Shown: positions 21,301 through 64,000, counted from the first letter of the stretch. The stretch is 64,000 nt of DNA from Paragordius varius (GCA_964247055.1 OZ176053.1:12586001-12650000), one strand, 5' to 3'. Notes: generated by a model from the sequence alone, not told the origin. Made by a program: numbers and translations.

Positions 21301-21743
21301 GGTCAGGAAATTCTAAATGAACTCGCTTTCTATATTTAGTTGTTGAACATTTCTATTTCATCTTTATTTATGTTTTGTATAGCAGGTGTTCTTCACAAAA
21401 ACTCAGGCCCATGTGAAGGTTGAAAAAATGTTCATACATTCGTTCTTTTGGTGAAGATAAAAAGCTCATCCTACATTCACTTGCGTGCTATAAAACGAGC
21501 ATATAAAATTGAGGATCGTAGGATTTTTAATACTTAATAACTTTTGAACTATATGGAATTTTTGAATTCTGAAAAGTGTTCCAAATAAAGTAAACACTAT
21601 ATTATAATATTTTAGCTGACAAAAGATTATTTGTTGAAAGTATTATAAAAAATTATAATTATATTACAAGGCTTGGGTATTTTTTATTAATTAGCTCTAA
21701 TTTTTAGTCCAGTATAATTTTCGTTGGCAAATAAAACTAAAAA

Positions 21744-23092
21744 ATGCCATATAATTACTATCCATCAACATTCGACACTATAGTGGATAATCCTGGGTAT
21801 ATATCATATTTTAATCGTCCAAGTAAGTTTCTTAAATCTTTTTTTTCTATTATTTATAGGCTTGGTCTCATATCTCAGACATCATCCAGTCTGAGTCTGG
21901 CTACTTGTTCAGCGACTGTTCCTCCTCAAAGGATCGAAGCTCGGGTTCCTGCTCGGTATATTTATAAATTCATTTATCCATTTTGCATTTTGTATATCTT
22001 ATATTTATAGGTTTGGTCCCATCCCACAGACAACATCTAGTCCAAGGCTGGCTATTCGTTCAGCGACTGTTCCTCCTCAAAGGATCGAAGCTCGGGTTCC
22101 TGCTCGGTATATTTATAAATTCATTTATCCATTTTGCATTTTGTATATTATATATTTATAGGTTTGGTCCCATCCCACAGACAACATCTAGTCCAAGGCT
22201 GGCTATTCGTTCAGCGACTGTTCCTCCTCAAAGGATCGAAGCTCGGGTTCCTGCTCGGTATATTTATAAATTCATTTATCCATTTTGCATTTTGTATATT
22301 ATATATTTATAGGTTTGGTCCCATCCCACAGACAACATCTAGTCCAAGGCTGGCTATTCGTTCAGCGACTGTTCCTCCTCAAATGATCGAAGCTCGGGTT
22401 CCTGCTCGGTATATTTATAAATTCATTTATCCATTTTGCATTTTGTATATCTTATATTTATAGGTTTGGTCCCATCCCACAGACAACATCTAGTCCAAGG
22501 CTGGCTATTCGTTCAGCGACTGTTCCTCCTCAAAGGATCGAAGCTCGGGTTCCTGCTCGGTATATTTATAAATTCATTTATCCATTTTGCATTTTGTATA
22601 TCTTATATTTATAGGTTTGGTCCCATCCCACAGACAACATTTAGTCCAAGGCTGGCTATTCGTTCAGCGACTGTTCCTCCTCAAAGGATCGAAGCTCGGG
22701 TTCCTGCTCGGTATATTTATAAATTCATTTATCCATTTTGCATTTTGTATATTATATATTTATAGGTTTGGTCCCATCCCACAGACAACATCTAGTCCAA
22801 GGCTGGCTATTCGTTCAGCGACTGTTCCTCCTCAAAGGATCGAAGCTCGGGTTCCTGCTCGGTATATTTATAAATTCATTTATCCATTTTGCATTTTGTA
22901 TATCTTATATTTATAGGTTTGGTCCCATCCCACAGACAACATCTAGTCCAAGGCTGTCTACTTGTTCAGCCACACTACCCATCCCACAAACGGCATCAAC
23001 TACTTTAAATTCTACTATTAATCCTAATCGGTAGTTTGGGATTTATAATTTTGCATTATAGACAGAACACACCCATGGGATCGAAGCACTAG
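21744..23092 (+). CDS. Putative cargo gene: Pro/Thr/Ser/Arg-rich repeat protein (~289 aa) built from tandem 96-nt exons
   Basis: Model: 21744..21796; seven 96-nt exons starting at 21860, 22011, 22162, 22313, 22464, 22615 and 22766; 22917..23030; 23062..23092. Total 870 nt, open. Repeat peptide RFGPIPQTTSSPRLAIRSATVPPQRIEARVPA. First-exon donor choice is uncertain. Confidence 0.65.
21860..22960 (+). repeat. 151-bp tandem array (~7.5 units) = 96-nt GC-rich segment plus 55-nt GT...AG AT-rich segment
   Basis: Period is exactly 151 and units are nearly identical. Each unit has CG|GTATAT...TTTATAG|G. Confidence 0.97.
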
Positions 23093-23682
23093 AGTGTGTT
23101 CAATTGATAGGTTCATTTTTGTGCGCCCCCATAATAAAATCTAGCATTTAAAAAGTAGACTCTTTTCCAGTCATCGACGTTTTACTAGATTCCTGTGGTA
23201 TTTTTTTGGGACGGGTCGAGCTCAAAATAGAGTTATTTCAATATTTACATAATTGGCCTTAATCAAAATTTAAATTACGATGAATATCGCATTTTTTAAA
23301 TGGACGATTTCTTTTTGCATTAACTTTAGAAACAGGGTAGTATTTTACCTAATTGAGGTTCGGGTCTTTAAGGGCCTATATAATACATGCCATTATAATG
23401 AAAAATAAACATCATGATTTATCAATATTGTTTAATATATTATATTACCAAAATTGATTAATTTAAAATTATATTTTTTCTAAAAAAAATCACATAGGCA
23501 TAAATAAGGCGAATCTGGCTCATTAGATAATATTATTCTAACTTTTTTTAACTTAACTACCCATCCTAAAACTATTACGAAATTTTAATTAGTCAGAAAA
23601 TGTTAATAAAATTTGATCCAAATATTTAAGTATCTTTATGTAACATAGTCTTATTATAATGTTTTTTTAAAAATTAATTCAG

Positions 23683-25031
23683 ATATTTCATTACAATATT
23701 TTCTTAATAGTGTCCGGAAACATAAAAAAAACATCCGACGCGACATATCTCCCTCGCAACTCAATACAATTTTACGATTTTCGTCTGACAGCCTTGATTT
23801 TATTACAAACCAGATTTTTCCTCAAGAACACATGCCTAAACGAAGAAATAAAACTCTAACCTACAGAAAAATGGTCGAAATATTCATACGATATCTTAGC
23901 GATCCGGGGCACCAGTCTGGTGTAGCTCTCGATTTCGGAGTGGATCGCTCATACGCAACGAAAATTATAAAGTTGGTCGCAGCAAGATGTGCGCGCTTAA
24001 GAGGTAAGTGGATTGTATTTCCTCGTAACCAAATTGAAATGGAGACCGCCAAAGAAAAATGGGCAGCCAAATACAAATTGACGCAAATAGTGGGTGCAAT
24101 CGATTGCACCCACATTCATATTAAGAAACCAACCAAATTTCCCAACGATTTTGTTAACCGCAAAAAATACCATTCCATCAATGTCCAGGCGACGGTGGAT
24201 GCCCAAGATAAAATAACCTCTCTGGAGGTTTGGTTTCCGGGTGGGACCCACGATGCTAGGATTTATAAAAATAGCCCGCTTTGTAAGGATATGGAAACGC
24301 TAAGTGAACACGGGAGCCTTCTGGGTGATAGTGGATACCCCCTATCACGATCCATTATCACTCCTATAAGGACACCTGTTTCTTCTCTTGATAAGAGATT
24401 TAATTATTATCACAGTCGGGAACGATGCTTGATCGAGCGTATTTTTGGGATTGTCAAACGTATATTTCCTATTTTAGGAAATAGGGTCCGAGTGGGAGAA
24501 TATAGTATTGGGAATATTATACAGTCCTGTTTTGTACTATATAATATTGGTAAGCATATATTTTTATTCTTATTATAATAACTTTAAACACACTTAAGTA
24601 TTTAGTATGATTATTTTTGCTTATGCTATACATAAGGTGACCAGATTTTTAACCGGTTATATGATGGAACCCGGTTTTAAGATGAGAACCGAAACCGTTT
24701 TAAAATTTTAAGAACCGTTTTGGTACCTCCAAATTCAAATTCAGTTCCAAAATCTGATATTTATTTTATTTTTGCGTATTTTGTATATATTTCGATAGAT
24801 ATCTATCGTAAAACAGACTATCGAAATATATTGCGGCCCGCACGTTTTTGACTCTACACTTACATCATATTATAAATAGGAATACATTTAAGATTAGAGA
24901 GAACCGATGAAGAGGAGTCGCCTACTGATTGTAGTTTATCGGAAGATATCAATATAGATCTGGAAGACCGAACAGATGGACACTTAAGGAGACAGGAAAT
25001 TATGCGACATTTATTATTTAATTATTCCTAA
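23683..25031 (+). CDS. Harbinger DDE transposase (DDE_Tnp_4/HARBI1-like); exons 23683?..24549 and 24880..25031, start exon unresolved
   Basis: Motifs GAIDCTHIHI, VNRKKYHSINVQA, GGTHDARIY, LLGDSGYPL and ERCLIERIFGIVK (D-D-E intact). The frame is open upstream of the called ATG (LRFSSDSLDFI). The spliced last exon gives an acidic tail ending GHLRRQEIMRHL. Confidence 0.92.
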
Positions 25032-26054
25032 CATGTAACATAATAAAATAATTATAATTTATTTTTTATTTCAAATAATAAATGAATAATGGTGTCAAGT
25101 TTGTCTCCCATGTTTCTGGTATACCGATCCATGTAATCTGTATCATTTTTTTTTTGAACGAGCCGACAACCCTTGTAAATATAATTAAAATATAATTTAT
25201 TTTTTAATAAATAAATATATGTTTATTTTTTTAATAACCAGTAACTTAGGCATTTTTTTAAATAATATCAGCAATCATATATGTACCTTGTCCGTTGATT
25301 TATCTTGTTATTGTAAGAACATAATATATATAATACTTGTTAAAATAGAAAATAAATATAAGGTGTGTTAACAAAATTATTGGATACCTTTTGGACGTTT
25401 TGGGAAACTCATTTTTATGTAAGATATAGATCAGGGCAAAGATCGCCAACATTTTTTCTCGCATACTTTTTAGGAAAAAAAATTAACGCGGGCACATGAA
25501 TATAAAGTATTAAAAAACTTTGTTATTACTTAAATACAAGATGAAAATATGTATCTCTTTAATTAAGGATTAGCACAGGCCATTTTAAAATAAATATCAA
25601 GAAAATTAAGTTATAATTTTGTTAAGGGAAAACTATGCAAAAATGTTTATTTACAATTTTATTCAGGCGGTTATGTTTTTAGATCTCGCGGTCAAAAAAT
25701 CCACTGTTTGGCCACATAGATGTTTGACGAGCTTTATTAATAAAAATCCTAGTAAAACAAAAGTTATATCAACAATTAATATAAAATATTTTTTCATTAA
25801 TGTTTTTTACATTATAACAAATATATGACACAAATTTTCGCCAATTAGCATATAACACAAAAAATTTGGCAAAAAATATTTTACTTTTTTGCATTTTATA
25901 TTCAATGATTTATTAAAGCCCATCTTTACTCTATATTGAAAATTGCGTCTCCCATAACGTACAAAAGGTGCCATTAAAATTTGTTACACTATGTATATAT
26001 ATTAAACCAGATCTCGTCTTCTTTCAGAATAGTAAGCCATATCCGCATAATGAC

Positions 26055-28231
26055 TTAAAAGGTCAAGCCTTAAAATTAAGTAAAACATACCTGATGTCGT
26101 TCCCTGGAAGTTAGTAAAGAAATTAGCATCTGATTGAACATAAACTCCTTAAATATAAAGGGTAAAAGATACCGGGATCCAGACATGCGGAGTAATCGTT
26201 TGATGTGTATGTGACATCATTATTATTAAAATTGGCATCTGATTGAACATAAACTCCTTAAATATAAAGGGTAAAAGATACCGGGATCCAGACATGCGGA
26301 GTAATCGTTTGATGTGTATGTGACATCATTATTATTAAAATTGGCATTTGATTGAACATAAACTCCTTAAATATAAAGGGTAAAAGATACCGGGATCCAG
26401 ACAAGCGGAGTAATCGTTTGATGTGTATGTGACATCATTATTATTAAAATTGGCATTTGATTGAACATAAACTCCTTAAATATAAAGGGTAAAAGATACC
26501 GGGATCCAGACAAGCGGAGTAATCGTTTGATGTGTATGTGACATCATTATTATTAAAATTGGCATCTGATTGAACATAAACTCCTTAAATATAAAGGGTA
26601 AAAGATACCGGGATCCAGACATGCGGAGTAATCGTTTGATGTGTATGTGACATCATTATTATTAAAATTGGCATTTGATTGAACATAAACTCCTTAAATA
26701 TAAAGGGTAAAAGATACCGGGATCCAGACAAGCGGAGTAATCGTTTGATGTGTATGTGACATCATTATTATTAAAATTGGCATTTGATTGAACATAAACT
26801 CCTTAAATATAAAGGGTAAAAGATACCGGGATCCAGACAAGCGGAGTAATCGTTTGATGTGTATGTGACATCATTATTATTAAAATTGGCATCTGATTGA
26901 ACATAAACTCCTTAAATATAAAGGGTAAAAGATACCGGGATCCAGACATGCGGAGTAATCGTTTGATGTGTATGTGACATCATTATTATTAAAATTGGCA
27001 TTTGATTGAACATAAACTCCTTAAATATAAAGGGTAAAAGATACCGGGATCCAGACAAGCGGAGTAATCGTTTGATGTGTATGTGACATCATTATTATTA
27101 AAATTGGCATTTGATTGAACATAAATTCCTTAAATATAAAGGGTAAAAGATACCGGGATCCAGACAAGCGGAGTAATCGTTTGATGTGTATGTGACATCA
27201 TTATTATTAAAATTGGCATTTGATTGAACATAAACTCCTTAAATATAAAGGGTAAAAGATACCGGGATCCAGACAAGCGGAGTAATCGTTTGATGTGTAT
27301 GTGACATCATTATTATTAAAATTGGCATCTGATTGAACATAAACCCCTTAAATATAAAGGGTAAAAGATACCGGGATCCAGACATGCGGAGTAATCGTTT
27401 GATGTGTATGTGACATCATTATTATTAAAATTGGCATTTGATTGAACATAAACTCCTTAAATATAAAGGGTAAAAGATACCGGGATCCAGACATGCGGAG
27501 TAATCGTTTGATGTGTATGTTACATCATTATTATTAAAATTGGCATCTGATTGCAGATAAAATCCTATACAGTAGGGTATGCAAAACATAAAGCTACAAA
27601 ATTTACCAAACTAATACAAGATATTAACATAATATTTTATCTTTGATTTTTGATGCGTTACTATAAAAACTAAAAGAAATACCCGGTCCAAAACTATTTC
27701 TGGTATACATTTTAAATGTATTAGCTTCTTTGAAAGCTTTTGAGCCTAATATATAGGGTAAAATATTACTGGATCCTACTGTACAGGGAAAATTTATCAG
27801 ATCTGTTTATTAAATAATTTTCCAAACCTACATCATCGTATGAGGACGATCCCCCTATTAGCAAACCATTGGTAGCTGATTTATGATATTGTAGAAGATT
27901 TATCAAAATATTCTCATGTTCTAAAAAATCGGCCACACTTCCGTTGCCGGATTGATTACATGCATCCATTTTTAATCTGATGCATAATCTGATGTTGTTG
28001 TATAACTTAATAACTTTGTCCACTGTAAATGCTTTTGGTACCAAAGTGTTGAATTCTTTGGTTAAAAGAATCCAATGCTTTCTTTTTTGGTATGATGTGT
28101 GTTTGTGGGATACTATAATTCGATAGCTAAATTTAAAAAAAATTATACCTTTTTTCTATTAAATGTACGAGTATTAAGCGAAAATCAATACGAGAGCTTT
28201 TATTTGCCGATTTTTTAATATGTGGCTTCAT
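26055..28231 (-). CDS. Harbinger Myb/SANT-like DNA-binding protein with a 13 x 28-aa repeat C-terminus (~546 aa)
   Basis: Exons 28149-28231, 27828-28126, 27770-27802, 27683-27745, thirteen 84-nt exons (27481-27564 stepping by 109 to 26173-26256), 26091-26147 and 26055-26068. Total 1641 nt, open. N-terminus RIDFRLILVHLIEKSYRIIVSHK..KRKHWILLTKEFN..FTVDKVIKLYNNIR..NQSGNG fits the Myb_DNA-bind_5/MSANTD pattern. Terminal exon uncertain. Confidence 0.78.
26091..27564 (-). repeat. 109-bp tandem array (13 full units plus a divergent partial unit) = 84-nt exon-like segment plus 25-nt GT...AG segment on the minus strand
   Basis: TGATTG recurs at 26131, 26240, 26349 and so on to 27548. Minus-strand unit has CCCG|GTATCTTTTACCCTTTATATTTAAG|GAG. 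Confidence 0.97.
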
Positions 28232-29775
28232 CGGAAATCAACCTCAAAAAGTACACTCAACATTCACATAAAATAAACATATGATTTAAAACAAGCCCAT
28301 TTCGGTGAAGGTAGAGACACCTTCACATGGGCCTCACTAACATTCGAAGACTTACACTTTAATTCTAAAGCGATAGAAGTGATCAGCATCAATAAATTAT
28401 TTAGAAAAAGTGTTTTTATAACATCTAAAAGCGCTTTAATACCGTCTCCATCATGGGTTAAAAAAATAAGTAGGCCTCAACAAAATTTGCTAAAAAATAA
28501 TTTTTTTGAATATATATGCATTTTTTAAAAACATTGGTATTCAAATTTAGCATATTTAATTATTGTGCAATCTCGGCATTTTGACCATTATTTTATCACT
28601 TCGATTCAAATTGGGGTATCTAAATATCCCAGACTAAATTAAATTAATATTTTTAAAAAACTACTGAAGGAAACGGTCCTAATTTAAATTTATGCCCTGA
28701 TAAAAATTATATAAATATGCCAAAATATCTTGATAAAATTTTGTTTTGAAAAAAAAGTTCCTCAAACTACTTCGACCCCATTATTATTTGCAAATTTTTT
28801 GCAAAATATCGTATTCATTTAATTTTAAGGGCACTAATTTTTTTATATAAATTACATTTAACATTGAGAGAAATAGAAAACGCGGTTTATTTTATTTTTT
28901 AATTTTACAATTTGACACATGTCTCAGTTAAGAAATTTTTACCTTTCGGATTTAGCTTACAATAAATTCAGTATTTTTGAATAAATTTTTTTATATATTT
29001 CGGTTTATTAATATTATCTAAGTACAATTTTTGCCATGGTTTCGATTTTGCATACTTTTTATATTTGATTTTAAAGGCATGTATCCAACTACCCCATTAA
29101 TCGAAGGACTAAAATGAGTGTGTTGTATCCAAGTGTTAAGAGAGCCCATTTCAGAAGAGCGAAAAAATTTAGAGTGTCGGACGCATCTAAAAAATAAAAT
29201 TTTAGAAAATATTGCTTTTTTATGTAGTTTATATTTTAGTGGTTATATTGAATGAACAATTTGCATTCACCAAAAAATATTTAACAATGTGTGCGCAAAT
29301 TTTGCTATTTTTAATACAGTTACAGTAAAAGTGATAATAACTTTATTATACTCGAGACCCATACCTTTTGTTTACCTATGTCCAGATAGTTTAAAACGTA
29401 ATAATTATTATGTAAGCACTCTCATGAGGTGTTTTAAATTATAATATTTAGATAATCAAATTAATTTAACTATTCTTTTTATTTTGAGTGCAGGTAACAA
29501 TTAAAACACATGTGCACCGCAACCATTTACAAAAATAAACCTTTCATTGTGTTTTTTTTAGTATAAATAAAGCGGCATAAATTTTCGTATATTATAACGT
29601 AGCTCGTATCCTACTCTTTTATATCGTCATTTGTTTTGTCTAAGCAGGTTTATTTTTATATTTATTATAGAAGTGTCATTACATATATCGGTGGCCAAAA
29701 TATTTTGACGCAGCTTTACCATATAACCAAAAAATATAATTTTATGCAATATTTACCATATAAACTATAATCTTG

Positions 29776-46813
<17,038 letters not shown>

Positions 46814-49369: not shown

Positions 49370-52300
49370 CTCAATCGTTTTCAAATTTTGTTTTGTGTTT
49401 CTGAGGGGTCGAGCATAAATTAGCCAAAGATTCTTCATCAAAACTAAGATTCTTTTTTGGAAACGTTTTGCCTAAAAGATGCCATAAAAAGAGAAATATT
49501 AATAACCTTTTAAATTTAGGTAGGCAACATAATTCTTGTGTAATATTAAAAATATGTTTTAAAAAACCAGAGTAAAATTACTTAGTAATGGCGTTTCAAA
49601 GTTATTTTCGTCAATTGAATTCATAGGATCGAAATCGGAATTTCCATTAACTACAAGAGCTCTTCGATACATTGTATCTCTACGACCAGGAGTTCGACCT
49701 AATCATTAAGAAATTAAGCGATTCTGATAATTAACTATACTTAAAATAAGGAACATCTCCGACAATATTTTTATTAAAATAAATATATTAAAGTTTTTAG
49801 CTGGTTATCAACACCTTTAAAAACTAATTATAAAGCAATACAATTGAAAATTTAATTTTACTTTTTATTTTAGCTTAAAGAAAGCACAATTTACATACCA
49901 GTGACTATATCGAACTTCCATTCATTAAATAAATCCTGAACCTTCTTACAGACTTGAGATACATTTTGCGTTCCCAAAATGGTAAAAAGTTTATTTACGT
50001 CCAAATGTACAGTTTCGAGATTCTTCAAAGAATTTATTGAATTTTCGTTATTTTTCGTGTGCAAGACTCCAAGTTGATTGAAAAATGCGGTAAGCTCGTT
50101 ACAATCTGTTGTTGTTTGATTCTATCGTGTTTAAACAAATTTTAGATACAGTTTGTAATACAAATATAACAGTATGCTGGGGTTTTACCTGTAACTGTTT
50201 TATAATGTCTTCAAATATTTCTTCATGATTTTGATCGGTTATATGCCCTTTGATATTTTTGATTTCGTGACAAATGTCCTAATAAATATTTTCAAATGCA
50301 AATATGTACCTTGCTATCTTGACTAATTTTAAAGGATAGATCTGTCTTTTTCTCGTTTGTTTTGGTTATAATAGATTCGGATTGGTGAGTTATCTAATAA
50401 AATATTTAATGGAAATCATACCTGTTCCAATTGTTTAGTATTGGTGTCAAAATATTGCTGGAGAGTTGTTTGGGAGTTTGTATTAAACACAGAAACTGAG
50501 TGAGATAATTGATCAATTTCGCTAATAATATATTTATAACAGTTTTAGCATGCAGGTTTTGTGTATAATAGTTTACCGATCATATAAAAAACAAAATTAT
50601 TTTATAATTTAATTAAAATCAAAAAGTTGCATTGCAAATTTTAAGCACACACTGGGTGTTTTTTAAACAGTTTACAAATATCTACAACACTAATCAAAAT
50701 ACACACCTTTCATAATCTAACACATTTTTTTAGTAGCTACTTTATTTAGGGCTTATTTAAAAATTTTGGTATTCGTATTTAAAATTGTCATTAAATATTT
50801 AACATATAATTGCTCAGGGATGCAAAGACCGACTCCCACCTCCTCGCGGGGCATCCCGGGTAACGCTAACGGGAGCGGCACTGTTTGTAAAGAACAGTCA
50901 ATGAACATCAATCCACAAGGAGGAAAACTAGTGTGTGGGGCGTGGCGGAATTGAGATTGGCTGTCTCATTTTCTTACAAAATACCACAATGCCTGTATTC
51001 ACACATATGGTTTTAAAGCGGGTTTATCTGGGCGCTATAACCAGCAGCCAGATGATAATAACGATAATATAAGTACTTAAAACGAAAGATGGAGTGGGAG
51101 CTTCCAAAGCCCAGAAAGGCACCTCCCTCGGCCGTAGACTTAAATCTACAAACGGATTGAGAGATTCGAAGTCTTTTTAGACACTCTCTAGCCTGGTACA
51201 GCGAATAAGGTACTCTCTCCTCCGAGTTAAGAGGTTGGCTATAAGGGCATATAGTCTATAAAAATCAAGCCTCATTACCTTTACCATGTTCAACAGCGAA
51301 ATAATAATGAATAAATACTACTTATAAAAACGTCTTTAAAGCTTTATATTATATATTTTTATACTGCATAATAATAATAATAATAATTATATTTTTAAAT
51401 AATACATCTACGGAAAAGTGAAATGTTACCGGAGAAAAAATCATTTAATATTAAAAATAATAACTTTAAATTTGGCACATGGAATGTCGGAACTCTTGTT
51501 GGAAAAGCTTGGATGATAATAAATGCGATTAAAGAACAAAAGCTTGACATATGTTGTTTACAAGAAACTCGTTTTAAAAACGGAGGTAATTATCAACATG
51601 AAGGTTTTACACTGTATTATGAAGGAGGAAAATCAGGGAAATCAGGAGTAGCAATAGCCATAAACGATCAAATAAAAGATATAATTGACATTACACGTCA
51701 CAACGACAGAATTATTCAAATGCGAGTGGCTTTCAATAACACCACCCTTAACATACTATCCATCTATACCCCTCAACAGGGTCAAAATGAAACTACCAAA
51801 CAGGAATTTTGGAATCAGCTTTATCAGATTGCACAAAATGTTCCCACAAATGACATACTTCTGATCGGCGGAGATTTTAATGGACACATTGGAATGCACG
51901 CTGATGGTTATGAAGGTATACACGGTGGAGTAGGTATTGGCTCTCGTAACAAAGAGGGCGAAACCCTCTTGGAATTCTGCAGTGCCGCGAACTTATTGAT
52001 TTGCAACACACACTTCTGTAAAAAACCTAGCCAAATCCACACATATAAAAGCGGAAATCACACATCGCAAATAGATTTTGTTTTGCTGAACCAACAACTT
52101 AGAAAAATTATAACCAACTTTAAAACTTATGAATATGATACACAACATAAACTAATAGTTGCTTTTTTAATAATAAATAAGAACCGACCTAGCCCTAAAA
52201 AATTGCCACAACTTAACGTTGCAAAACTTAATGATCCTAATACAAAGCATCAATACATCAACCAAATTACACCTGAACTAAAACATTCCCCTAACAACGT

Positions 52301-55300
52301 TCATGACGGCTGGGAGCATCTCAAAAACACCCTACTCTCAAACGTTTTTAAAATCTGCGGAAGAAAACGTACCAAAACAAAATCTCAATGGTGGTGGCAA
52401 AGCGATTTTAAACCCTTACTGAATGAGAAAAGAGATGCCTTTAAGAAATGGAAAGCTTCTAAACATGATGATGACAAACATTTTTACATAATGATTAAAA
52501 AAAGAGTAAAGAAAATAATAGCTGACAAAATGAATGAAAGATGTTTGGAAATGGCCAAAAAACTTGAGGGAGAAATTAAAAACTTAAAAGTTTTTAAAAC
52601 ACTAAAAAATATTAATAATAATAAAAAAGATATTCGGGTAGTGAAAGCCATAAAAGATAAAAATAACAACATAGTTACTGACACTCTTAGCATTCAAAAT
52701 GTATGGACACAATACATGCAAAATATGAATTTCCAGCATTCAAATGTCGAGATCCCAAACTTACCTCCAGTTATTGGGCCACCCCCAATCATTACTGCAG
52801 AAGATGTGAGCTTAGCCATGCAAAAATGTAAAATCAATAAGGCATCTGGTCCAACGGAAATCAAAACTGAAATGTACAAAAATATTCCTGAAGCAATTAC
52901 CTATTTCACAGAGCTATTTAATCTAATTATAATGGAGGAAAAAATCCCGAACGACTGGAACCAAAGTGTCATAATTCCAATATATAAAAACAAAGGCGAC
53001 ATGCTTAACTGCGCCTCCTACAGACCATTAAAATTACTTGAACACGCAACAAAATTATTCGAAATTATTATAGAAAAGAAAATACGTCAACTTTGCTCGA
53101 TCGACGAAAACCAATTCGGTTTCCAACAGGGGATCAGCACCTCTGACGCCATATTCATTCTTAGAAGGCTACAAGAGAACTACAGATGCAAAAACAAAAC
53201 CTTATATCACATCTTTATTGATTTAAGCCGTGCATTCGACTGCATCCCGCGGTCCATGATCACATTTGCGTTACGGAAAAAAGAAATTCCGGAATGGATA
53301 ATAAGAATAATAAACTTACTATATGAGAACACCACTAGTTGCGTGAGAACTCCCGTGGGTGCCAATCGATTTCCAGTAACTGTCGAACTACACCAGGGCT
53401 CCATCCTCAGTCCATTACTATTTATCATCATTATGGATGTAATAACTGATAATATAAAAACAGGTTTACCTTTTGAGATGATGTACGCTGACGACATAAT
53501 ACTAACAGCCACCAGCGAAACAGCCATTATCAATAAATATAACCTCTGGAAATCTACTTTAGAAAAATTTGGCCTCAAAATTGACATAGATAAAACAAAG
53601 GCTTTAATAACAGGCTCACCGGTACCTGAAATAAAATTCCCTTGCTCCATTTGTCACTCTGAAGTGAAACTTAATTCCATCAAATGCACCAAATGCCAGC
53701 TGTGGGTCCATAAAAAGTGCTCACAAATTAAAGGAAGTTTATTGGGCATTGAAAATTTTATATGTAAAGCTTGTGCAACACCAGATATAAACCAAAATAA
53801 TCCCACACAAACTACCTACCTTCCATCTCCAAACATCGAAATAGTAAACAGATACAATTACCTGGGTGACACAATAGCAGCTGATATGAATATTAAAAAC
53901 GCCATAACAACACGGTCACATCAGGCTTGGGCCAAATTTCATCAACTCAAGTATATAATGAAACACAAACACATTTCAAACCCAAACAAGGACAAAATCT
54001 ACACGATTGCCATTCGCCCTGCCCTCACCTATGCTAGCGAATGTTGGCCCTTAAACCAAACTAATGAAAATAAATTATGTGACATAGAAAGAAAAATCCT
54101 CAACTCATGCCTCACCAATCAGTATCACAATGATAAAACAAATAATAATAAAAGCATACATAATCTGTTTCATATCGCACCTATGTCTTCTTTTCTCAGA
54201 GCAAATCGTCTCAGATACTGGGGTCACATTGAACGCTCAAATAGTTGGATTAACAAAATTAGATCCTTTCATCCGAACGGCAATTTAAAACGAGGCAGAC
54301 CATACCATGATTGGGAAAAAACACTCAGCAATGACTTACACTTAACTCAACTGAACAAAGACGATTGTCTCGATCGCAAGCTATTTCGCTCAAGAATTTG
54401 GAAGCTAGCACATGCTGGACAAACAACGACTTGATGATGATATAATTGCTCAATAATTTTTACTAAAGCCAACGCTTTTTTGAACAGAAATATTTACATG
54501 GCCAATTATAAAATTGAATATCAATATATATCTCTTAAGATATGGAATTTCTAAATAACTTTGAGCAAAAATAAGAGTTGAGTTTGATTGGAAAGTAAAA
54601 GTCTAGGGTTGGAAATTCATTTATAATATTATATTCTAAATACTGCACCAACAATTTCAAAGCCACGTTATATCAGGCGGAATGCAACGAAAAAATCAAT
54701 GTAATACTACAAAAAAATATTTTATACCATTACCTTTTAAGAGCAAAGAAAACAGTATTAGTAATCAAACTTAAACTGTTTCAGACGAAAATTCCGAAAA
54801 ATTATTATAAGGTAAAATCAAATCAATTGTTCTAAGTGTGTTTAAAATATTTTAAACAGTGAATATAAAAAACATTTGTACATAATTTCAAATTAATATG
54901 AAAAATGTTTATTACCAGATTAGGCAATGTATTATGTAACAAATATTCTATATTTTAACATATTCGTCCTGTTTAAGATAAAAAATCATAAAATAAACGT
55001 ATTAATGAAAATTTTTAAAAGCCCGACAATCCAAACAAAATATTTAAATTAGTCATATGGTAATTAAGTTTCGTAAGTCACGGAAAAATTTTACTCGTTA
55101 ACTTGAGATTCTAACGTATCGATTTGTTCGAAATTTTCGTTTTGAACAAGAGACATTTGATTATAGAAATTATCGTTTTCATGTTTGTTATTGGATTCTA
55201 ATTCCTGCATTTGTTGCAGCAGGGCTTGAAGTTTCTTAAACACAAATATGGATATATTGGTTAAATACATAGAATAAATAATCAAAGATGACACGAATAA

Positions 55301-58300: not shown

Positions 58301-61300
58301 TTTATAATTTATAAAAAACAAAAATTGATATACCTTAAGTAGGGCTTTTTTGCTTAATTTTTGATTGATTTCAGGCCTGTTGGTTATATGTTTCGCCCGA
58401 TGGGCATAATCCAAAGTACTCAATGTTTCCTCCATATTTAGCACGGAAGGCGAGATGGTTGCAATTATGGATGTTTTGGTCCGACCTCCCAACGAATCTT
58501 GCAGGATTCGGGTTAATTTACTTTCTCTGTATATAGAAATGCCTTAATTCAAAGGAAAAATCTGAAAATTTGATAAATGCCGAAATTAAAAATAATGTCG
58601 AAAAACTAATATATTGAATCATATTTTTGGACTCTTAAGTGCAAACATACGGAATAATATGGAATTGAGGGACTTAAGCTAATTCAGGATTTTAAATGGC
58701 TGCCTTGATAAAAGAATTTTAAATGGTTGCCTGTTTTATAATGCTTTCATTTTTATGCCTCTCGTATGTTACAGCAAATCAATAATATAAACTGCTGAAA
58801 AGGCAAGCAATATATATAAAGTTAAGAACCTATATGGGATATGTGTACTACGTTCAACGAGAGCATTTATAACGCGACCAAGTGTTAACAGACTTTGGTT
58901 AATATTCCCGGCCTCGCGCAGTCTTTTATCCACAGCTCCTGACCGACTCACATTTTCACTCCCGGCTAAATCCACCTAAAATCGCACAAAATATATTTTA
59001 CATGATATGTTATACACAGAAAACGAAAAAAATAAAAGACAACCCCATATTATTTAATCCTTAATTATTAGAAAATCACTCATCATATGGAGTTTCGAAA
59101 GAATAAAAGGGCAAATTGTGTAAACTCAATTATATATTTAAAATATTAATTATATAGTTCAAATATGAACAACAACGGTTTAGTATTGTTGTCTTTTTTT
59201 TACATTTTGTCTGTATGAATATTAGAAAAATTTAAGAAAATATATTTACTAAATTGAGTTTGCCAGTTTTAAGCAATTCCTCCCCATCTATATCATTTTC
59301 CTTTATGTGAATCGTTATGGAGAAAACCGAGTGAGATCGACTAGAAAACAAAAAAAAAATATAAAAATTTGACTGCTTTTCTATTGAAAGAGATGACATG
59401 CAGTAAAAAATAATAAAGACCAAACATAAAAAGCATGTAATATTTTTAACAATATAAAACCATATTTCAAGCTTGATTTTATGAAAATACCTATTTAAGT
59501 TAATAAATTGAGAATAAAGTAAATTGGTAGAATTTTATATCATTATAATTGATATAAATATTTATTCCCTATCCAATATATTTTACATAAATTTTATTAC
59601 CTGGAAGTGGCATTTAAAAGCGTGGCAGCTGTTTGACGTCTCTGAGCTCCGCGTTGCAGAATTTGGTAGACTTCGTGTTTGTTATGAACTGTTATTTCCT
59701 CCAATCCCTACAATTATTTACACTGATAATTGCGAATAAAAGTACCAATATTATTACAAATCACTGATTGGCACATTAAAAAACTATAAAATTTTAGAGT
59801 AAATAAGGAAATTTATACTGAAGATTTTTTATTAATTTATGTTTTTGTCCATATTTTTTGAGTGGTTATAATTTCTTTTAGAGCTTACAGTGGACAAAAT
59901 TCATTTATCACCTGATAAAAAGACCTAATTATTCCTGACAATATTTAAAGTTTTACCAGCCCCTTCCGTTAATCCAAAAGGAGATTATATATCTGCAAGT
60001 AGCGTTATTAACGGATATCATTAATTGACTTCACTTTAAATACTTTTGTTTTAAAAAAAAGCCCTTTTTATACGAATGCAGATTAATAATATTATGATGC
60101 AAAACTAAAAATTTTTAATGTTAATAGAAGTGTCTAATTAGATCAAATTAGTTCATAATTAGTCAAGTCTATTTTAAATAAAATTCGACATTTGTCGCAA
60201 GACAAAAAACTTCTTAAAATATTCGACGTGTTTATAGATACAATAAGTTATATATATTTTCTTTTTGTAAAATCTAATTTTAGAAATATATGGTGCTATA
60301 TTGGAATATTTATTTTTAACCCTTCATTAACTTTTCATTTTTTGTCCTAGTTCACCTTTTGGGGTAGTTTTATATCCCAGAGCTGTACAGTTTTGAATGT
60401 TAATTAAATTAAAATTTAATTATCAAACATTGTTCTTGTGTGTTAGAGAAAAAAAAAGTTTAAAGTTTTGTGACCTCTAGAGCCTAAAATTGGGACAGTT
60501 CCAAACGATTGAAACGGACAGCTGATATTAAAATGATAATATATCAAGTCTTAGCTGGTAAAATGAAGCCTAAAAGCTTGTTAAAGTTATTTTTATACAT
60601 AATCTAACCATAATATATATTTATTTGCCTGTTTCATTCGCGATTTAAAAAATATATAAAAATGGCGGCAAAAAAGTTTGAGGTGTCGATTTTTTAAAAT
60701 TTTACATTTACGGAAAAAATATATTTTATAAATGCGCCTATAGGACTCAGGAAAACATATATTGAAATTCGGCTTATTTCCTTAAATACTTTTTAAGATA
60801 TTGTTTAAAATAGACCTGAGATATAAAACTACCGCAAAAGTTAATGGAGTGTTCTAGAATTATTGATAACCTAAATATTATTTATAGGAAAAAATATTGG
60901 AAAAGAGAAAATTTTGTTAAAAAATTAATAAAAATCGAAATTACATGAACAAGAACGGACCCTTTACGAGTGGCATCTTCAAAAATTTTAAGGCGTGGAT
61001 TTTCCATTCCAACGGCCAAAAGATCAAATAATTCCTCATTATAGAGTTCCAAAAAAGAAACACGCACTGAATATTCACATTCCTATGTATAATAATTTGA
61101 AATATAAACGCTACTCATATATTTATTTAATAATAAAGTCAAACCTGAATTTTTAATTTTTCAAATAAATCATTTAACGTCCTTGGAATTATTCCCGATG
61201 AAGGCGATAAACCTAATTGTTCAACTTTAGATTCCAATTTTTCTCCTTCCATAGTATACGTTTTCCCTGTTCCAGTTTGCCCATATCTACAGTAAATAAA

Positions 61301-61607
61301 ATATTTACGCAAATATTGTACAATTATATCCCAATAAAACTTCCTCAAGAATAGGCAACACAATCGTACTATAAATTTCTTTTTGCGGAGTATTTGGTGA
61401 AAAAACTTTGTCAAAGGTAAAGGTTTTGTTGTTTGTTTTATCTTTAACGGTAATTTCCTTCCTTTCTGGATTAATATCTATCACATCTTGATATTTCTTT
61501 TCCAATATATTAGTTGGCCTATTAGATAATAAATAATAAACAAACCTGCATCTAACAGCAACCTGAATATTTTGATTGTGACTTTTATCAGTTCTTACAT
61601 TTACCAT
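49370..61607 (-). CDS. KIF11: Kinesin-5 (BimC/Eg5) motor protein; multi-exon, 3'-most exon uncertain
   Basis: Motifs [133 protein letters not shown] and [13 protein letters not shown]. BimC box with CDK site VTGRTPGRR at ~49670-49870. Stalk exons resume at 50521 after the LINE-containing intron 50522-55094. Confidence 0.93.
50817..50877 (+). ncRNA. HDV-like self-cleaving ribozyme at the 5' end of the LINE
   Basis: P1 GGGAUGC(50817-23)/GCAUCCC(50851-57); P2 CUCCC(50833-37)/GGGAG(50870-74); P3-L3 ACC-UCCUCGC-GGG; P1.1 GG; J4/2 GCUAAC. Nearly the antigenomic HDV core CUCCACCUCCUCGCGG...GCUAAGGGAG. Confidence 0.85.
51423..54434 (+). CDS. APE endonuclease-reverse transcriptase ORF (1003 aa) with a PHD-like Cys-rich insert
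   Basis: [22 protein letters not shown] and SQIDFVL (APE); [21 protein letters not shown] and MYADD (RT); [27 protein letters not shown]; C-terminal LRYWGHIER and KRGRP. No stops. Confidence 0.95.
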   Translation: MLPEKKSFNIKNNNFKFGTWNVGTLVGKAWMIINAIKEQKLDICCLQETRFKNGGNYQHEGFTLYYEGGKSGKSGVAIAINDQIKDIIDITRHNDRIIQMRVAFNNTTLNILSIYTPQQGQNETTKQEFWNQLYQIAQNVPTNDILLIGGDFNGHIGMHADGYEGIHGGVGIGSRNKEGETLLEFCSAANLLICNTHFCKKPSQIHTYKSGNHTSQIDFVLLNQQLRKIITNFKTYEYDTQHKLIVAFLIINKNRPSPKKLPQLNVAKLNDPNTKHQYINQITPELKHSPNNVHDGWEHLKNTLLSNVFKICGRKRTKTKSQWWWQSDFKPLLNEKRDAFKKWKASKHDDDKHFYIMIKKRVKKIIADKMNERCLEMAKKLEGEIKNLKVFKTLKNINNNKKDIRVVKAIKDKNNNIVTDTLSIQNVWTQYMQNMNFQHSNVEIPNLPPVIGPPPIITAEDVSLAMQKCKINKASGPTEIKTEMYKNIPEAITYFTELFNLIIMEEKIPNDWNQSVIIPIYKNKGDMLNCASYRPLKLLEHATKLFEIIIEKKIRQLCSIDENQFGFQQGISTSDAIFILRRLQENYRCKNKTLYHIFIDLSRAFDCIPRSMITFALRKKEIPEWIIRIINLLYENTTSCVRTPVGANRFPVTVELHQGSILSPLLFIIIMDVITDNIKTGLPFEMMYADDIILTATSETAIINKYNLWKSTLEKFGLKIDIDKTKALITGSPVPEIKFPCSICHSEVKLNSIKCTKCQLWVHKKCSQIKGSLLGIENFICKACATPDINQNNPTQTTYLPSPNIEIVNRYNYLGDTIAADMNIKNAITTRSHQAWAKFHQLKYIMKHKHISNPNKDKIYTIAIRPALTYASECWPLNQTNENKLCDIERKILNSCLTNQYHNDKTNNNKSIHNLFHIAPMSSFLRANRLRYWGHIERSNSWINKIRSFHPNGNLKRGRPYHDWEKTLSNDLHLTQLNKDDCLDRKLFRSRIWKLAHAGQTTT
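55730..55945. mobile_element. Diverged MITE related to the 13200-13483 element
   Basis: Shares ACATAATTTATTTTAGGGTGAATTT and AACCTTTGAACAATTTAAATT motifs in inverted arrangement. Confidence 0.55.
57620..57775 (+). repeat. Short intronic direct duplication (two ~50-bp copies)
   Basis: CTCAATATTCACAA.CCATAA.CTAT.AAGTTATATAGGCAATTA at ~57621 and ~57726. Confidence 0.8.
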
Positions 61608-64000
61608 GTCAATTTTTCAAATGTTGCTGGAATTTTGAACCAATAGAATTGTAGTATTTTTGACACACTATAAAAGTAAAATAACAGTCAAAATTTGTGA
61701 ATTAATATATGTTTCTGATAAAATTCAGGATTCTCATGCTATTTTTTTGGGTAAGAATTATTTCATTTAACGATTTCCTCCTTTGTATAGGAGGATTAGC
61801 GCAAAATATGTTAAATAAATATATATCATGTAATAAGCAAAACTACATTTGATCCTAATATTTAGCAGTCGATACGAAGGTCAATTTTTAATAATCCTTT
61901 AAAACAAAATGTGGATTGCACGATAATAATTTGACTATCGATTGCAAATGGCCAAAATCGAGGCTATAAAATATATCCTGATAAAATATATATTTTTATA
62001 CAAATATTAAAATCCTCCGCTTTTGGTTTTTGACCGGAATAAAAAGTGGACACACTTTGTGACTGTCCATAAATGATTGACGATAATTATCACACTGCTT
62101 TAAAAGTTTTTTTAGTGAAAACTAAATAATTATATTATTAAAATGTATCATAAACTTAACCATCCGTCAAAATCGGAGGTGCTGAAACATATCCTCATAA
62201 AAGATATATTTGATAGATAAAAGTAACTGAATTCTATTTTTAATTCTGGGGCCTACGCGCGATATACTAACTTTTGGGGTAATGCCGATATCCTAAAATG
62301 ACAAAATTAACACTTATTATGTTTGAACAAAATAAAAAATATCGCTAATATAGGTATGCTATATTTAAATAGCAAAACAGAACAATTTATTATATGTGGG
62401 TTTAGAAAATTCCAAATAGTTTGCCCTTCATTAATAGGCTAGTTATTTTTATTTATGGAAGATTATGGCATTAAAAATTTTATGATTTTGAGGCATGATT
62501 GAATCGGTTTATGAAGCTTTATATAATTGGATGATTTTAAACATTTCTTTCATATTTTAATCAATATTTGTTATTTTTAAAATTATGTGATAAATTGTTA
62601 TTTTTAACAAAATTCACCCAAGTCAAAAACGAAGCTTTAAATAAAAATTCTGTGCAATAAATGTTTAACATCATCGAAAGAAAAATATCACAGTAAAGAG
62701 GTATTCCACAATGCTTAGTACTATAAAATTTGCATCAATTTAAGCTAAGCTAAATTGTAAATGTCAAATAAAGCATATAACCTTTTGTCGAACAATATTT
62801 TGTGTTTTGATCTCAAAAAATTATAACTTCCGGAGGTAACATGCAAAATATAATGCATTCAATATAGATTTAAGGTATTATTTTTTGAAATGAGGCATTT
62901 AGTTTTTACCAAAAGATTCTACCATTGAGCGCAAGTTTTATCATTTCGATGTTACCACAAAAGTGGTTGAAACTTTATTGTTTCTTTTGGCAGGCCTCTG
63001 AAACTAAAAAAACCTTGAGACAAGTTGATTATCAATTCAAATTTAAAAAAATGTGTTGAAGTGTATTCAATAAAGTTTCGAATCATAGTGGTAAACGCTA
63101 AAAACATCAATGAATTATATAATTTGATTGCTTTTAAATTTTTAAATAATAATTATGCTTTTGTAAGGCTTAAAGGAGAAAAATTATCATTTGATATTCC
63201 ATGGCTTAAATGACAAAATATGCCCTAAAATTTTTTTCCATAAACAACTTAGGCAATGAAATGTTAGGTAACTCTATAAACATTTTTCAACAAATAAGCA
63301 AAAGCTATTTTTAATATATTTCCAGATTTTTAGACTGGTAATTTTAAAACATTAATTTATTTTAAATGTAATTGAAAATATAATGTTTGTTAACTTCATT
63401 TAGAATAGCAATCTATCATAAATTACATTTAAATACGACCAAATTTTAATGATAAAAGTAATATTTGGCTAGTGCGACTAGCCAAAGTAGCTGGTAAAAT
63501 TCCACTATTTGATTTTTATACCCTACACAGTTGATATAAATTGGCAAATAACTGAGGCTTTTACCCCTAACTCTCACCTCAAATACGTTATAATCTAACC
63601 ATTAATCATTCAAGCTTTTTACAAAATATCATTAAAAATTACCTTTATATTTATTAATTTTGTATTTTCTTTCAAGTAAAGTAAAACCTTAAAGTTATAT
63701 AAACCATCTTTAGCTAAAACAAAAAACTAACAATATCATCAATGGTCCGATATTCTTGGTTAAGCCGATTTTCTAAAAATAATATACAACTCCAAAAAAT
63801 TGTTGATTAATTCCATATTATTGAGTTATTTTTTTGAATATAATTTGGATCACCCGAAATATATTTAGATACTGCACATCCAATTCTAACATCTAGTAAA
63901 CAAATTCATTTGTTGGCCCATATTTTTTAAACTGGTGTTATACAAAGGCCTAAAATAAAACCTAGTCTTTGGTTCTCTTTAAGGAAAGGCCCTATTTGAA

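Follow-up and report, generated by a model that had tools for sequence, protein, structure and literature searches.

The window analysed here is a stretch of 64,000 nucleotides from Paragordius varius (GCA_964247055.1, OZ176053.1:12586001-12650000), and all positions are counted from its first letter. It contains a complete PIF/Harbinger transposon, in which a tandem array of 109-bp units lies downstream of the element's Myb/SANT-like gene and on the same (minus) strand. The first-pass annotation read this array as a run of short exons and very short introns that adds a tail of repeats to a transposon Myb protein. The features of the element, with the evidence for each, are as follows:

21406..28333, no strand assigned: complete PIF/Harbinger element (perfect 15-bp terminal inverted repeat, TIR, and 3-bp target site duplication, TSD)
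23832..24578, plus strand: transposase ORF of 248 aa, DDE_Tnp_4 (PF13359, E = 1.3e-34, full profile 1-158)
28149..28231, minus strand: predicted exon 1 of the Myb/SANT-like gene, with ATG at 28231, 27 codons + 2 nt (from sequence; alone without a Pfam match)
28127..28148, minus strand: candidate micro-intron of 22 nt, an in-frame link between exons 1 and 2 (from sequence)
27828..28126, minus strand: predicted exon 2, Myb_DNA-bind_5-like helices (PF13873, E = 4.4e-4, 20.6 bits, cut-off 21.7)
27803..27827, minus strand: candidate micro-intron of 25 nt in phase 1, its end reading TTTAAT..CAG (from sequence and alignment to a related family)
27683..27802, minus strand: putative coding segment, 120 nt and phase 1-1, with ...NSFGP G at its end (from sequence)
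27565..27682, minus strand: link to the array, with two possible routes (sequence, shuffles)
26148..27564, minus strand: array, 13 units of 84 nt + a 25-nt GT..AG piece (repeat finder, pattern search, frame translation)
26091..26147, minus strand: last, shortened unit of 57 nt (alignment to the unit, frame translation)
26104..26116, minus strand: TACTAAC then TTCCAG, putative branch site and acceptor (sequence inspection only)
26069..26090, minus strand: 22-nt GT..AG piece related to the 25-nt piece (from sequence)
25909..25914, minus strand: AATAAA, the first on this strand after 27811 and downstream of the whole array (from sequence)

The terminal inverted repeats of the element match at 15 of 15 bp (21406-21420 and 28319-28333) and the duplicated target, TCA, is present on both flanks. 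Together with the DDE_Tnp_4 transposase, these features place the element among the Harbinger transposons. The genome carries many diverged Harbinger families, and the paralogous transposase families found elsewhere in it are 44-58% identical to the one described here. There is just one full copy of the element in the 110.5-Mb genome, and the terminal segment 27980-28333 is the only part of it that is repeated. In the reads, this segment occurs at approximately 7x the single-copy depth as part of deletion derivatives, where it is joined to the 151-bp repeat of the element; these derivatives are without the 109-bp array. No DNA homology of the element to the related Harbinger families was detectable.

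The element contains further repeated DNA. A dispersed repeat of approximately 170 bp (25446-25622), with at least 40 genome copies at 68-78% identity, sits between the transposase and Myb genes. A second array (21851-22970, plus strand) consists of 7.4 copies of a 151-bp unit, made up of a 96-nt GC-richer piece and a 55-nt AT-rich GT..AG piece. The first-pass annotation took this array as eight exons. Since the same exon/intron appearance arises in 48-81% of shuffles, the 151-bp array was dropped as supporting evidence.

Within the Myb/SANT-like gene, the candidate DNA-binding domain is carried by exon 2. Searched alone, this exon matches PF13873 from near profile position 24-29 with 20.6 bits, just under the Pfam cut-off of 21.7. 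The Myb_DNA-bind_5 domain that had been expected is the one matched, although at a score below the threshold. Exon 2 also aligns without gaps to the ORF of a related Harbinger family (BLASTP, 35% identity over 88 aa, E = 4e-14), and the Myb ORF of a related family shows a weak MADF/Myb_DNA-bind_4 match. A phmmer search of the Myb exon against 1.8 billion representative proteins returned no relatives, only two spurious repeat proteins, and the exact product of the 92-aa ORF is not on record.

Exon 2 is followed by the 25-nt candidate intron 27827-27803 (GTTTGG...TTTAATAAACAG), which corresponds exactly in codon and phase to a 23-nt GT..AG candidate in the related family. The earlier reading had used a 34-nt intron starting with GTAGG. 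This is probably wrong, as none of the homology-proven micro-introns described below starts in that way, and the 25-nt piece is the better candidate for the link. The putative coding stretch that follows (27683-27802) contains a 24-nt GT..AG piece (27746-27769) that leaves the frame intact whether it is kept or removed. The segment 27661-27776 derives from an old copy of the repeat unit that has since diverged; it aligns with a score of 49 against a null of 23 +/- 4, and its exon part is 63 nt long. Homology to the unit did not rise above the null in the 96 nt before unit 1 or in the DNA after the array.

From the end of the coding stretch there are two possible routes into the array. The first, proposed in the first-pass annotation, is a single 118-nt intron. 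The second comprises a 22-nt intron (27661-27682), a 43-nt exon (27618-27660) and a 24-nt intron (27594-27617), the last of which would remove a TAG; 29 nt then continue into unit 1. When the intervening 270 nt were shuffled, a stop-free route using micro-introns only (20-36 nt, a maximum of three introns) was present in 2.75% of cases, while the last link to unit 1 by itself was found by chance in 13-25%. When introns of up to 200 nt were allowed, 99% of shuffles gave an in-frame link, and the 118-nt solution therefore carries no weight by itself. It does reach the frame, as had been stated, but it has the two-micro-intron route as a rival. The frame of the units is indeed the phase reachable from the upstream ...NSFGP G donor.

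One array was reported by Tandem Repeats Finder: it spans 26120-27566 and has 13.3 copies of a 109-bp period that match at 98%. It resolves, on the minus strand, into 13 units, each composed of an 84-nt piece and then an invariant 25-nt GT..AG piece that starts with GTATC and ends with TTTAAG. A pattern search of the whole window found 13 identical occurrences of the 25-nt piece, where none is expected. The division into thirteen 84-nt and 25-nt segments is therefore as originally described. The 84-nt piece amounts to 28 codons without a stop in the proposed frame (phase 1-1), and its translation is the 28-aa peptide quoted in the first-pass annotation, in which the units vary between D and N. 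The unit is open in two of its three sense frames. In unit 1 only the proposed frame is open; a C-to-A change in this unit leaves the peptide of that frame unaltered but introduces a stop into the other frame that is otherwise open.

The divergent first (GFYLQSDAN...) and last (57 nt, ...FFTNFQGTTSG) units were both said to keep the frame, and translation bears this out. The last unit runs collinear to the initial 56 nt of a unit, and exactly 27 nt (9 codons) are absent from it. If the 25-nt pieces are retained, a stop follows 18 codons past each junction. An ORF scan of the array gave only fragments of 36-54 aa, in keeping with the earlier remark that a six-frame scan misses the repeat protein. 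Past the last unit, the frame stops at 26055-26057 when 26069-26090 is removed and at 26002-26004 when it is kept. On the minus strand from 27811 to 25914 there is neither AATAAA nor ATTAAA. As no poly(A) signal precedes the end of the array, a transcript that ends at a standard signal must cross it. The contigs of two individuals cover the array at approximately 10x and 13x the single-copy depth, which shows that it is real DNA and no assembly artefact.

In the related Harbinger copies, the Myb ORF is immediately followed by between one and three tandem units of 85-92 bp. All of these have a 25-nt GT..AG piece, and the remaining 60-67 nt contain stops in all frames; thus, repeats at this place can be plainly non-coding. 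Two of the related loci (G000:C1:9052984-9056803 and G000:C6:3943865-3945472) are tail-to-tail inverted pairs, one with two Myb ORFs facing each other approximately 260 bp apart and the other with two transposase ORFs separated by approximately 310 bp. A likeness by eye between ...VTYTSND... of the unit and ...ITHTATD... of an exon in a relative is not claimed, given that no DNA homology is detectable.

The genome of P. varius splices introns of 21-32 nt. The clearest case lies in the window itself, where a 22-nt GT..AG piece (61308-61287) splits the P-loop of a kinesin between ...IFA and YGQTGTGKT... The exons on either side match positions 26-79 and 81-115 of the Pfam profile, with the split codon between them, and the gene has a 27-nt intron 210 nt further upstream. 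This kinesin-5-like motor gene (60900-61650, minus strand) has introns of 27, 22 and 62 nt, of which the 22-nt one splits the P-loop Ala codon. The whole genome was scanned with kinesin, kinase and myosin profiles, and twelve loci were inspected. Approximately 14 more introns of 21-32 nt were recognized by homology, each of which restores an invariant motif of CDK, Polo or Chk1-like kinases, kinesins or myosins.

These homology-proven micro-introns start with GTA or GTT, are AT-rich and mostly end with TAG or CAG. One unambiguous kinesin micro-intron ends with AAG, as the array piece does, and the layout of a Polo-kinase intron (GTTTTAC...TTTTATATTTTAG) is almost that of the array piece. The micro-introns of this genome are characterised by GT..AG borders, a length of 21-32 nt, AT-richness, a GTA or GTT start and a branch-like YTNAY close to the acceptor. 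The array piece shows every one of these properties, being 25 nt long and 76% A+T, with a GTATC start, TTTAC and TTTAT motifs and an AAG end. The homology-proven examples of 21-29 nt in kinesin and kinase genes (L037, L038, L040, L041 and L043) often have CTAAT, TTAAT or TTTAC, located 3-10 nt before the acceptor. Lengths of 21 and 24 nt, both multiples of three, also exist, and those seen contain an in-frame stop. The myosin II gene of the window (32000-46800, plus strand) has ordinary introns of approximately 70-400 nt, with none below 40 nt in the head region, which indicates that micro-introns are a minority class that varies from gene to gene. Elsewhere in the window, a LINE ORF of 1003 aa (51423-54434, plus strand) encodes an endonuclease, a reverse transcriptase and, behind the latter, a PHD/C1-like zinc finger.

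The significance of the unit was assessed against dinucleotide shuffles of its sequence, each searched for a piece of 20-36 nt that starts with GTA or GTT and ends with AG preceded by any base other than G, with an open remainder divisible by three. This configuration was present in 18% of the shuffles when any phase was accepted and in 7% when the phase was fixed. The bare exon/intron appearance is therefore worth a likelihood ratio of approximately 14 at most. Codon usage adds a likelihood ratio of only about 2: the unit scores 5.9, where coding 84-mers have a mean of 4.5 and random open sequences a mean of 2.2. The five unit variants named in the first-pass annotation are present, and three of them are synonymous in its frame. 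The bias towards synonymous change that had been drawn from them did not hold up: over codon positions 3:1:2 the variable sites among the units number 7:5:3, a spread that does not reach significance, and the four differences that separate the individuals in the Myb gene are without exception non-synonymous.

Neither the units nor the second individual gave a signal of selection; units that are 98% alike carry almost no record of it. In the second individual, every unit has a pair of neighbouring non-synonymous differences (N to T, D to H), which are read in its collapsed array contig (~13x) as C>G at 26218 and T>G at 26220, turning minus-strand AAT GAT into ACT CAT. The array as a whole appears to have been homogenised to a different variant, which would represent concerted evolution within the species. 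Between the two individuals, the Myb gene has 0 synonymous and 4 non-synonymous differences and the transposase 4 and 5, respectively. The second individual also has a 9-nt in-frame insertion at a codon boundary (27652). This is the only indel between the individuals in the proposed coding path; the three others in the element are 1 nt each. Like this 9-nt indel, those of 27 and 21 nt have lengths divisible by three. The old flanking copies, 63 nt upstream and 57 nt downstream, are likewise divisible by three and both open.

Searches for relatives of the unit elsewhere in the genome found none by DNA and none by peptide, and the unit junction had no match in metagenome contigs. A search of public sequencing runs returned only DNA-like matches to the locus. 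The RNA-labelled run that was mapped to it gave no reads, and the two individuals show uniform DNA depth. A literature search on the array returned nothing specific.

The best single explanation for these observations, and one that is favoured on balance, is that the array is an in-frame array of exons and micro-introns, with the upstream gene model corrected as above. The unit would pair a symmetric 84-nt exon (phase 1-1) with a complete spliceosomal micro-intron of 25 nt. Amplified in tandem, this module would reside in the 3′ portion of the Myb/SANT-like accessory gene, within a complete PIF/Harbinger transposon of which there is a single copy. As introns of 21-32 nt are removed by the host, a unit no larger than that of a minisatellite could hold a whole exon along with a whole intron, and unequal crossing-over could then multiply the coding units with the frame unbroken. 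The locus is presumed to be transcribed and the 25-nt pieces to be removed, as the arrangement of the sequence suggests. Transcription to the first poly(A) signal beyond the array, followed by splicing, would give a protein of approximately 550-600 aa, comprising a DNA-binding domain and then 13 copies of a 28-aa repeat rich in Asn, Asp, Ser and Tyr. The exon-skipping isoforms that were suggested earlier are pure conjecture. As for the claim of a repeat tail on a transposon Myb protein, the array, its frame, the Myb gene on the same strand and the micro-introns of the host all speak for it, but the Myb match lies below the cut-off and the 34-nt intron was not upheld. At the level of the sequence, the unit has what a coding VNTR is expected to have, namely an intron and a symmetric exon, each of them complete, that fit the frame of the flanking exons.

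An unlikely alternative is that the array is a non-coding minisatellite past the real end of the Myb gene, situated in the 3′-UTR or in untranscribed DNA. The stop codon of the protein would then be the TAA of ...SRIQ (147 aa) or the TAG of ...VNILY (175 aa), both upstream of the array. Slippage or unequal exchange would have multiplied the last exon-intron segment of the gene, leaving units whose exon-like look is inherited or accidental. The 85-92-bp units of the related Harbinger copies set a direct precedent, as they follow the Myb ORF, contain a GT..AG piece and are stopped in all frames. The configuration of the unit is also reached in 7-18% of shuffles, purifying selection is not seen and no RNA reads were found. 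Against this, the present unit is stop-free and divisible by three, and it is entered in frame through micro-introns only, a route with the 2.75% shuffle frequency given above. In addition, the TAG of the short form falls inside a good 24-nt intron candidate, the poly(A) signal is absent before the end of the array, and an mRNA with 14 splice-competent introns behind its stop codon would be a poor one.

It is improbable that the array is transcribed and removed whole, as an intron of approximately 1.58 kb from a donor at 27682 to an acceptor at 26104, leaving a repeat-free protein of approximately 170 aa. The last, diverged unit does contain a textbook branch-site heptamer and a pyrimidine-rich CAG acceptor, the phase fits, and long introns are also present in this genome, as in the myosin gene. 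However, thirteen closer donor/acceptor pairs of the kind that the genome uses would compete with such an intron, the exon past the acceptor would be only 13 nt or would end after 13 codons, and nothing conserved supports it. It is very improbable that the array is a set of cis-acting binding sites for the proteins of the element itself, with a core of approximately 35 nt around the intron-like piece. Comparison of the old copy (27776-27744) with the units shows that this piece and its GGATCC border are better kept than the exon-like parts, as such a role would predict. Yet the motif is not above chance on the other strand or at the left end, where the best score of 12 equals the 99.9th percentile of the null. 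All copies have the same orientation and lie 0.6-2.3 kb from the end, and the deletion derivatives at ~7x depth do without the array. The subterminal repeats of other cut-and-paste transposons, with which the array would then be comparable, have their motif near both ends and usually in both orientations, a pattern that the element does not display.

If the splicing of the exon/micro-intron array is real, DNA that any repeat finder would classify as a 109-bp satellite codes for protein. With micro-introns, the minimum size at which a tandem duplication can yield in-frame repeats in a protein would then be lower. This would affect the annotation of micro-intron genomes, since six-frame translation and standard gene finders miss such genes, and it would bear on the origin of repeat proteins and the diversification of transposon accessory proteins. 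A further step, which is possible but doubtful and is put forward tentatively, is that satellite dynamics directly build and resize repeat proteins, and that the Myb protein of this transposon has gained a 13-unit tail that evolves in concert. If that holds, it would, together with the 151-bp array of the element, suggest a general path, particular to this genome, by which a 'satellite' becomes protein. Should the splicing not be real, the locus is a warning that splice-like tandem repeats are common in this genome and can mimic exon arrays.

PIF/Harbinger transposons with a Myb/SANT-like second gene are known from Harbinger3_DR and from the domesticated pair HARBI1/NAIF1. The element described here resembles them in its DDE_Tnp_4 transposase, putative Myb/SANT-like second gene, short TIRs, 3-bp TSD and shorter non-autonomous derivatives. 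It differs in that its accessory gene is cut by candidate micro-introns and may carry a 364-aa repeat tail, in that the duplication is TCA where TTA or TAA is usual, and in that the Myb match is just below the cut-off. Like ordinary transposon minisatellites, the array is arranged head-to-tail, its units are 98% identical, the copies at its edges have diverged, and individuals differ by changes fixed across the whole array. In contrast to them, its unit is stop-free, and the frame is continuous with the upstream gene after removal of a consensus-like micro-intron.

Ultra-short spliceosomal introns are found in Paramecium (approximately 25 nt) and in dicyemids (approximately 26 nt). Those of P. 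varius are of the same length class, with GT..AG borders, AT-richness and a branch-like motif tight against the acceptor, and mostly have lengths that are not multiples of three or give a stop when retained. Unlike the introns of Paramecium and dicyemids, they coexist with ordinary and long introns, and the 13 pieces of the array are candidates.

Coding tandem arrays whose unit encompasses complete exons and introns are represented by the human LPA kringle IV-2 repeat, with a 5.5-kb unit of two exons, and by the spider flagelliform silk gene, which has iterated exon-intron pairs with homogenised introns. The array would share with these systems a unit of exon plus intron, in which a symmetric exon allows the copy number to change without a frameshift, and introns that are as uniform as the exons, as concerted evolution predicts. 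It is set apart from them by a 109-bp unit, a 25-nt candidate intron, a minisatellite-like character and its location in a transposon gene. As exon-plus-intron tandem units are already known, what would be new here is the minisatellite scale that micro-introns permit, together with the setting in a transposon gene.
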